DNA of 64,000 nucleotides. It comes from Antechinus flavipes (Eukaryota). The DNA lies in assembly GCF_016432865.1 (NCBI RefSeq), contig NC_067401.1, positions 186,248,001 through 186,312,000 of the forward strand, read 5' to 3'. The position numbers and the translations under genes were made by a program. Below, piece by piece: positions 363 through 46,909 of this stretch (within the stretch, counting starts at the first letter, position 1; the number at the start of each line of letters is the position of its first letter). The notes under the pieces were generated by a model, which searched no databases, was not told where the DNA came from, and saw only the letters and a program-made list of their open reading frames with translations.

Positions 363-18391
<18,029 letters not shown>

Positions 18392-44250: not shown

Positions 44251-44347
44251 TGATAAGGGTTTTGTCTGTATTCCCCCCTTCCTTTGGAAAACCCAAGGGT
44301 CTTATCAGGCCAGCATTTCCTTTCCTCTTTCTTCCCCTACCTTCCTG
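44251..44347 (+). promoter_or_regulatory. GP1BA: Putative megakaryocytic GATA/ETS promoter of GP1BA
   Basis: TGATAAG (44251-44257), CTTATCA (44301-44307), ATTTCCT (44315-44321) and CTTCCTG (44341-44347), 100-200 nt upstream of the proposed exon-1 ATG. Confidence 0.6.
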
Positions 44348-44444
44348 TTCTTGCCAAAGCCAGGCATCTTGGTTCTCCATAGGGTAAGCTCATAGAGGCA
44401 TACAGTTCCTGGCAAAAACTATGAATTGGAGGTGCTTGTGGAAA

Positions 44445-46909
44445 ATGGTGAGTAGTGGGAGAGAAAGGTCAAACCTGAGGACTGGAAAGTAATATTGACC
44501 TAGCTGAAGGTGAGAAGGGATGGATTTTTCAGTCTGGCAGTGGTAGTAACAAAGAGCCAGTTGATTAGAATGTTAGATACTTGAGATCTGGAAAGAATCA
44601 AGAGAGCTAGTGGGATTGGGTGGAGAGATGAAAAATGTGGATCTGAGGAAGAAACCTGAGTCCTCTGGGGTAATCTAAGGTTGAGGAAATAGTAAGAGAC
44701 TTAGAGTCACATACCTAGAGAGGTCTTGGAGAGACTATGGGGCTGAGAGGTAGCACCTGAATCTTTGGGAGGATTATTTGTTGGAGAATAAAAAGTGAGA
44801 AACTGCCTGGTAGGGGTGGAAAGGAAAAGTGAATTAGGAGCGTGGGAAGGGGAGGGGTAAGAAGTCAGGGACCTGGGTGGTCTGATCCTGGGTTCTTCAG
44901 GAATCTGAAAAAAATAGGAAAATACCATTACTTCTTTTCCCCTTTCACAGGACCCTGTGCTACTCTTGGTCCTCCTTTTCCTCCTCCTTCTGGGACCCTC
45001 CTATTCCCAGTCTCCCTGTGAGACTCAAAAAGGGGCTAGCAAGATGGAAACTAACTGTGAATCCCTTGGTCTGAAGTCTATACCACCAAAGCTATCCCCA
45101 GACACTGCCATTCTCTTCCTTCAGAATAATGGCCTGAAATCCTTCTCCACTTCTTCTCTCGGTTTTCTAACCCAACTCACTGAACTCTACATAGCTAAAA
45201 ATAATATGAGTGTCCTGATAGCAGATGGGAAGCTTCCACTCCTCTCAATTCTGGATCTCTCTGATAATTGCCTAAAGACCCTGCCTTCACTAGCACACTC
45301 CCTCCCTTCTCTTACCTCCCTTGATCTCTCCAGAAATGCCCTAGAGTCCCTGTCTCCACATGCTCTGGCTGGCCTGGATTCGTTAGAGAACCTCTACCTT
45401 GGAGGCAACAAGCTGAGGAGTCTGCCCCCAGACTTTCTGAAAGCAGCATTCAAACTCCAGAAGCTGGATCTATCGAAAAATCGCCTGGAATATCTATCAG
45501 CCGACCTGTTGGCAGACCTCCAGAATCTAAACACCCTCTTCCTACAGGATAATCAGCTCTCTATCCTTCCTTTTGGCTTCTTCCGGGATCATCTCCTACC
45601 TTATGTCTTCCTCCATTCCAATCCGTGGAATTGTAACTGTGAACTTCGATACCTACGTCACTGGCTACAGGAAAATCAGGGTAATGTCTACCTTTGGAAG
45701 GAAGGTGTGGATGTCAAAGTCATGACTCCAGATGTGAAGAGTGTCCTGTGTGAGGTTCCCTTTAAGACACCTGTTGTCAGTTTCTCTGCAAATTGTCCCA
45801 TCACTGGGGATGAAGATTATGACAGCTACAATGAGTATGATGAGGTAACTGCACAAGGGGTCTTAAAATCTGAAACTACTACTATTCCAACCACCATATC
45901 TCTGGAGCATTCCACAGTCCTTAGTAGGTCAAAACTCACCACAACAGAACTCACCACTTTCCCAATAACCCCAGAAAAAAACACATTCCCAACTACGAGA
46001 AGGTCCATCATATTCCTTAACAGCCCAAAAATAACTGGGCTCCCAACTATATCAGAACTTACTAGGTTCCTGAACTCAGAAGCTACTACATTTCACATCA
46101 CTCCAGAAAATACCATACTCCCAACTACCCAAGAGGTCATCATATTTCTTAACAGCTCACAATCTACTACTCAGTTCCCAACAATGCCTAAACTCACTAG
46201 GTTCCTGATCTCCTCAGAAGCTACCACACTGCAGATCACTCCAGAACCCACTGCATTTTCAGAGAATCTGGAAACAACTAGATTCCAAACTTCTCCAGAA
46301 AACACCACATTTCCAGTAACCTCAGAAACTACCATGTTGCAAATAACCTCAGAATCTGTCACATTTCCAATCATAGATTCCATTGGAGGTCCTATGTCTG
46401 TTACCCCGCCCAGTCTTTTTTCAACTTTAATCCTCCTGAGATCCAACATTCTGCCACCAAATGAAGCTGTGGCTCTAGGAAACTTAGGTGATCCTAGCAA
46501 TTCCTCCTCCCCCATTTCCACCTCCTGCTGCCTTCTGTCTCTGAGGTTCTACATCTTTGGAACAGCTTGGGTTCTTGTCTCTTCCATTGTTCTCATTCTC
46601 TTCTTAGTTCTAGCTCAGCCCCCACTTCATCTGCTAAGGACCCATACCTTTATGGAGGACATCCCCAATCCAAGGGCCACTGTCCACCTTGAGCTCCCTA
46701 AGGGGAAGGAAGTGATAGTCCATAGAGCTTGGCTTCTCTTTCTTGGAGGATCAATACCTTCCTTCCGCACTAGACTCTTTCTGTGGGTACAGTCCAATGG
46801 CAGAGTGGGACCTCTGACTCTGAAGAGGAAGCCATCTGCCATAAGCCTTGGTCGAGGGGAAGACTTGCTGGGGTCTGTCAACATCAGGTATTCAGGCCAC
46901 AGCCTCTGA
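44445..46909 (+). CDS. GP1BA: Platelet glycoprotein Ib alpha. Proposed exon 1 ATG 44445-44447 plus exon 2 44951-46909 (653 aa)
   Basis: LRR array, WNCNC cap, beta-switch VYLWKEGVDVKVMT, acidic tyrosines DEDYDSYNEY, mucin stalk, CC then TM helix, filamin site PSFRTRLFLWV, C-terminal RYSGHSL*. Exon 2 identity is certain; start assignment is inferred. Confidence 0.93.
45947..46369 (+). repeat. GP1BA: Degenerate coding tandem repeat in the GP1BA mucin stalk (18-aa unit, higher-order ~45-aa unit)
   Basis: ELTTFPITPEKNTFPTTR / EATTFHITPENTILPTTQ / EATTLQITPEPTAFSENL / ETTRFQTSPENTTFPVTS / ETTMLQITSESVTFP; the first two are each followed by an IIFLNS...LTRFL block. Confidence 0.8.

Follow-up and report, generated by a model that had tools for sequence, protein, structure and literature searches.

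Comparative evidence for an exon-1 start codon in GP1BA of Antechinus flavipes and other marsupials

Introduction

Human GP1BA, the gene for the platelet glycoprotein Ib alpha chain (GPIb-alpha), has a single intron, and a type I membrane protein requires a signal peptide at the start of its reading frame. In the window analyzed here, a 64,000-nucleotide stretch of the Antechinus flavipes genome, the GP1BA codon at the position of the eutherian initiator reads GTG. Where, then, does translation of GPIb-alpha begin in this marsupial, and how did the arrangement arise?

An earlier note on this DNA had proposed that exon 1 carries the start codon and that the start was relocated between marsupials and eutherians, and both annotation and comparison across species now support that view. 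We propose that an exon-1 start, joined to exon 2 by a 44447>44951 splice and relocated in the marsupial stem, is the best explanation of the locus (probability about 0.88), a reading that rests on annotation and comparative evidence. The exon-1 start is already implicit in public gene models. New here are its polarity as a gain in marsupials, the recurrent loss of the old exon-2 ATG, and the recognition of an ATG flush with the splice donor as the invariant start; no description of the exon-1 start arrangement was found in literature searches on GP1BA gene structure or marsupials.

Results

GP1BA in the Antechinus window

In a protein search, the open reading frame (ORF) at 44957-46909, extended to the acceptor at 44951, was 100% identical to XP_051851891.1 (661 aa, Antechinus flavipes), for which the RefSeq title is "platelet glycoprotein Ib alpha chain [Antechinus flavipes]". 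The next best protein matches were GP1BA of the Tasmanian devil at 86% identity and of other marsupials at 66-76%; identity with eutherian GP1BA was 36-53%, over local alignments only. Precomputed Pfam leucine-rich-repeat (LRR) families are assigned to the matches, the LRR head being the N-terminal ligand-binding domain. The translation runs through (i) the leucine-rich-repeat head, (ii) an acidic Tyr-rich stretch, (iii) a Thr/Pro-rich mucin-like stalk, (iv) a transmembrane segment, and (v) a tail ending RYSGHSL, and the last four of these are common to the marsupial and eutherian proteins. A Mito_carr gene lies downstream of GP1BA in the fetched devil, possum, manatee, and squirrel loci. From its sequence, we assign the gene in the window as the GP1BA orthologue of A. 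flavipes. A pseudogene reading is ruled out by the intact 650-codon ORF.

The Thr/Pro-rich stalk, encoded at 45900-46500 of the window, features imperfect repeats such as TTFPITPE and TRFLISSEATT. Its length is very variable among marsupials (proteins of 607-751 aa), like that of the eutherian macroglycopeptide region.

Structure of the 5' end

The following features of the window define the 5' end of the gene. Here and below, a slash in a nucleotide sequence marks an exon-intron boundary.

44303..44321, + strand: promoter block found by alignment to be conserved, which contains a TATCAG GATA motif (44303-44308) and a TTCC ETS core (within 44315-44321); its function is predicted from motif and position only
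44421..44423, + strand: ATG1, the first ATG in exon 1 and the RefSeq start, which prefixes MNWRCLWK to ATG2 (XP_051851891.1 begins MNWRCLWKMDP)
44445..44447, + strand: ATG2, the final three bases of exon 1 and the predicted invariant marsupial initiator (AAATG/GTGAGTAG, identical in 9 of 9 marsupial genomes)
44448..44950, + strand: intron 1, 503 nt, phase 0, bounded by a GTGAGT donor and by an acceptor made up of a polypyrimidine tract and cacag (sequence inspection and script)
44951..45010, + strand: opening of exon 2, encoding DPVLLLVLLFLLLLGPSYSQ, the predicted remainder of the signal peptide (sequence; N-terminus alignment)
44951..46909, + strand: GP1BA exon 2 coding sequence to the stop codon (ORF list; 100% identity to RefSeq)
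44957..44959, + strand: GTG codon at the ancestral (eutherian-type) initiator position, 6 nt past the acceptor like the ATG of manatee and squirrel

The two exon-1 ATGs are in frame and 8 codons (24 nt) apart, and the frame upstream of ATG1 is shut by an in-frame TAA at 44385. The donor that adjoins ATG2 (GTGAGT, 44448-44453) matches the MAG/GTRAGT consensus at eight of nine positions, in agreement with the earlier description of ATG/GTGAGT at 44445-44453 as a consensus donor with A at -3 and G at +4. ATG2 keeps this G at +4 both spliced and unspliced; ATG1 has A at both -3 and +4. At the other end of the intron, a polypyrimidine tract and cacag extend to 44950, which bears out the proposed acceptor, the opening of exon 2 at 44951, and the intron length of 503 nt. 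Exon 2 then begins GAC CCT GTG CTA, and the spliced 44447>44951 reading is M-DPVLLLVLLFLLLLGPSYSQ, in which a Leu-rich core followed by a PCE...NCE motif can be aligned with the N-termini of eutherian, bird, and frog GPIb-alpha. From this anatomy, together with conservation, positional homology, and annotation, we infer the 44447>44951 junction.

Exon 2 by itself offers no early AUG. Its first in-frame ATG is at 45044 (KMETNC), codon 32, past the signal peptide, as the earlier note had it, and past the first N-terminal-cap cysteine. The unspliced frame into exon 2 meets a TAG at 44915, after which it contains no ATG before exon 2, and unspliced reading from ATG1 meets a stop after 23 codons. 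An assembly error at GTG 44957 is excluded by the presence of the same codon in the independently assembled Tasmanian devil genome.

Comparison across nine marsupials

Eight further marsupial loci were fetched, and their donors and acceptors were located by script. The resulting DNA set (n = 9) spans Didelphimorphia to Diprotodontia and comprises Antechinus, devil, bilby, koala, Dromiciops, wombat, opossum, brushtail possum, and sugar glider. ATG2 and its donor, AAATG/GTGAGTAG, are invariant across the set, the frame is open across the exon 1-exon 2 junction in every species, and the homologous intron 1 of the other marsupials measures 414-550 nt. ATG1 is present in all but the wombat, where the triplet is ACA (wombat locus 2977-2979). 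The 27 nt from ATG1 through ATG2 carry no indel in any marsupial, with 11 variable columns; the stretch directly upstream of ATG1 contains indels of 6-14 nt among the species aligned.

The first two codons of exon 2 are sense codons in all nine species, GAC or GAT followed by CCN or CTC. At the third codon, where the old start lay, the species differ as follows.

Antechinus, devil: GTG
bilby: CAG
koala, Dromiciops: ATG
wombat, opossum: AGG
brushtail possum: AAG
sugar glider: AAC

The GTG that had first drawn attention to the locus is thus correctly read in Antechinus but is only the dasyurid state. In the seven marsupials that lack the old ATG, the first in-frame exon-2 ATG is codon 32, 86, 88, or 258, far past the signal peptide, so the sole AUG before the signal peptide in their spliced message would be in exon 1. 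For the wombat, ATG2 is the only possible AUG, because ATG1 is replaced by ACA and the exon-2 position by AGG. In the unspliced stretch upstream of exon 2, which is closed by a stop, an in-frame ATG occurs only in koala and opossum.

Agreement and conflict among gene models

XP_051851891.1 begins MNWRCLWKMDPVLLL, with its start at ATG 44421 and its junction at 44447>44951; the claim that this ATG would add 8 aa is confirmed, and the RefSeq protein includes those residues. RefSeq GP1BA models of 10 marsupial species have an exon-1 start. Those of devil, sugar glider, koala, tammar, Dromiciops, bilby, brushtail possum, and opossum open M-x-x-[RK]-x-x-x-x-M-D-[PL], and that of the wombat, which is without ATG1, opens at MDP, i.e., at the donor-adjoining ATG. 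The devil (G3VTH2) and wombat sequences in UniProt are the same as those of RefSeq. As most of these models come from one pipeline, their agreement across species is not fully independent. The models (XP_051851891.1, XP_023358549.1, XP_056673691.1, XP_027712937.1, and others) share with our reading the exon-1 ATG spliced to DP...; they choose the longest ORF, from ATG1, wherever it is present and are silent on AUG usage and on the evolution of the arrangement.

One Ensembl-derived opossum entry in UniProt, A0A5F8H3D0, conflicts with the spliced opossum RefSeq model. It begins MTTYSFPLPQDPR, from an ATG within the 3' end of the intron (opossum locus ~3412-3441). As a general marsupial start this candidate was rejected, since that ATG is missing in seven other marsupials, save for a differently placed one in koala. 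The A0A5F8H3D0 start is probably a mis-annotation that arose from single-exon modelling.

Sequencing runs that are probably from the same species hold 0.90-0.99 of the sampled words. Searches for transcript-derived support were made at the protein level. A word search of transcript-derived protein fragments with the first 160 residues returned none at E<=1e-20, and there was no Logan-derived marsupial protein among the 120 matches listed in the full-length search.

Outgroups and the polarity of the change

In manatee and squirrel, the GP1BA coding sequence is confined to a single exon, and the acceptor region reads cacag/GTCCCC ATG; the initiator lies 6 nt past the acceptor, at the position of the Antechinus GTG, as the earlier note had placed the eutherian ATG. 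The chickadee coding sequence also occupies a single exon, with ccag/GCC ATG (3 nt past an acceptor-like site), and the tungara frog (Engystomops) reads ccag/GTCCACC ATG (7 nt past an acceptor-like site), the chickadee and frog acceptors being predicted from sequence only. No monotreme or reptile GP1BA orthologue was among the matches listed in the full-length protein search, and the timing of the relocation rests on eutherian, bird, and frog outgroups.

An alignment that would polarize the change had been suggested with opossum, platypus, and chicken. The comparison made here includes opossum, a bird (chickadee), manatee, squirrel, and frog. Because these outgroups as well as koala and Dromiciops have the exon-2 ATG, we consider that ATG ancestral and the exon-1 ATG a gain on the marsupial stem. 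The old ATG is gone in seven of the nine marsupials through at least four independent changes (GTG, CAG, AGG twice, AAG/AAC). Placed on the accepted marsupial tree, these states would imply losses in (i) the opossum, (ii) dasyurids and bilby, once or twice, (iii) the wombat, and (iv) the possum/glider/kangaroo stem, again at least four.

The frog gene model (locus 4001-15007) features an intron of ~9 kb inside the LRR domain, with tblastn pieces that overlap at residues 160-165; unlike the frog, the other fetched GP1BA coding regions are unbroken after the signal peptide. Either a true intron gain or an artefact of assembly or modelling may account for the frog intron.

Promoter block and exon 1

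The GATA and ETS sites that had been noticed just upstream of exon 1 are conserved. The motifs, at 44303-44308 and ~44317-44320, occupy columns that are invariant or nearly so in the alignment of eight marsupials with manatee and squirrel. Within exon 1, the marsupial ATG1 aligns with CTG in eutherians, whose exon 1 is without ATG. The alignment of marsupial and eutherian donors is ambiguous by ~10 nt, which leaves strict donor homology not established. By analogy with the human mRNA 5' end, transcription would start at ~44375-44385.

A donor-like sequence, AGG/GTAAGC (intron start 44384; 44382-44390 of the window), lies ~60 nt upstream of the real donor and upstream of both ATGs. Its GT is kept in all marsupials examined and is missing in eutherians. 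The site lies close to where transcription is expected to begin, and it may act as a promoter or initiator element or serve as a minor alternative donor.

Which exon-1 ATG is used

Under the scanning model, most ribosomes start at ATG1 when it is present in the transcript, and some start at ATG2. A variant of the main explanation is that only ATG2 is in the mRNA or is used, with ATG1 upstream of the transcription start or bypassed, such that the RefSeq N-terminus would be 8 residues too long. We regard this as possible but would not bet on it. The wombat retains ATG2 despite its ACA at ATG1, and of the two ATGs it is ATG2 that lies in the better context, with A at -3 and G at +4. Codon positions 1, 2, and 3 of the 8-codon extension contain 3, 5, and 3 variable sites, respectively; with no third-position excess, there is no sign of selection on the extension as protein. 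Between ATG1 and ATG2, an out-of-frame ATG (CTCATGG) occurs in five species (devil, bilby, possum, glider, and opossum); Antechinus reads CTTGTGG there. However, eight of nine species retain ATG1, with A at -3, indels are absent from the 24 nt that separate the ATGs, and the alignment with eutherian exon 1 indicates that the region near 44421 should be transcribed. Taken together, the missing coding signature, the out-of-frame ATGs, and the wombat without ATG1 point to ATG2 as the essential start and to a neutral extension.

The out-of-frame CTCATGG could also divert some leaky-scanning ribosomes.

Other first exons and non-AUG initiation

A second alternative holds that the gene uses a different first exon or donor, for example that at 44384 or one belonging to an unrecognized exon further upstream, and that ATG/GTGAGT is incidental. 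The site at 44384 lends this reading some substance, as it agrees with the donor consensus at seven of nine positions and marsupials conserve its GT. Splicing from 44384, however, would leave no AUG before the signal peptide in seven of nine marsupials and therefore no functional receptor. Moreover, the GATA/ETS block and its distance from the donor match those of eutherian exon 1, which would put 44384 near the expected transcription start and not in an exon (a placement that draws in part on the human mRNA 5' end). We judge a different first exon or donor improbable.

Non-AUG initiation, in which exon 1 would be untranslated as in eutherians and translation would start at GTG 44957, a near-cognate codon exactly at the ancestral start position, had been named as the alternative to relocation; it is highly improbable. 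One or two in-frame exon-1 AUGs with A at -3 would be encountered first by scanning ribosomes. Moreover, marsupials do not preserve the position as a start (bilby has CAG and glider AAC, neither of them near-cognate; wombat and opossum have AGG; possum has AAG), in contrast to the invariant exon-1 ATG.

Discussion

Overall, we propose the following model for the exon-1 start. Transcription would begin downstream of the conserved GATA/ETS promoter, and exon 1 would terminate in ATG 44445-44447, fused to the consensus donor. Excision of the 503-nt phase-0 intron would join this ATG to GAC CCT GTG at 44951, and translation from exon 1 would continue directly into the leucine-rich signal peptide. 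If transcribed, ATG 44421 would be the first AUG, 24 nt upstream, and it probably also initiates, adding 8 residues to the n-region of the signal peptide. As the products of ATG1 and ATG2 would both shed the signal peptide, either AUG is expected to yield an identical mature receptor.

In evolutionary terms, the ancestral tetrapod start would be the exon-2 ATG, a few bases past the acceptor, as kept in eutherians, a bird, and a frog. The marsupial stem would then have acquired in-frame exon-1 ATGs, after which the old exon-2 ATG became dispensable and was probably mutated independently in most marsupial lineages, to GTG in dasyurids. A single shift of the initiator across the 5' intron in the marsupial stem, followed by at least four later decays of the exon-2 ATG and with a possible coupling to splicing, is quite probable.

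The architecture of the gene is otherwise shared with eutherians: the same promoter block, one short 5' intron, a homologous acceptor, and an exon 2 with nearly all of the coding sequence. Manatee and squirrel, the eutherians compared, have no ATG in exon 1 and have their initiator 6 nt into exon 2. In marsupials, by contrast, exon 1 closes with the predicted initiator, and the codon at the exon-2 position can vary freely.

N-terminal extension through the gain of an upstream in-frame ATG is a general and well-known mode of gene evolution. The marsupial GP1BA start is ordinary start-codon turnover of this kind, with an in-frame ATG gained in the former 5' UTR, the ancestral ATG decaying in several lineages, and the mature protein unchanged. 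It differs from the general case in that an intron separates the new start, which abuts the donor, from the old one, and that only the cleaved signal peptide is changed.

An exon-1 start would settle how GPIb-alpha can be made in marsupials when the placental start codon is missing, and it favors the spliced RefSeq models over the single-exon, Ensembl-type model for opossum. It would also provide a phylogenetically resolved example of a start codon that crossed an intron while the old one subsequently decayed. The consequences for the protein are small, being limited to the cleaved signal peptide, and the locus is of use chiefly for annotation and for teaching how start codons turn over. If one stem shift and repeated decay are true, the locus would offer a clean, datable natural experiment in such turnover. 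Likewise, because the start codon would be flush with the splice donor, only spliced mRNA could yield the receptor, and GPIb-alpha synthesis could be coupled to splicing in megakaryocytes.

Finally, marsupial GP1BA may be compared with related platelet glycoprotein genes. GP1BB has a single intron a few bases past its ATG, such that exon 1 supplies the start, an arrangement like that proposed here for marsupial GP1BA. The coding sequence of GP5 lies in one exon, and the likening of GP1BA to GP5 in the earlier note may be mistaken.
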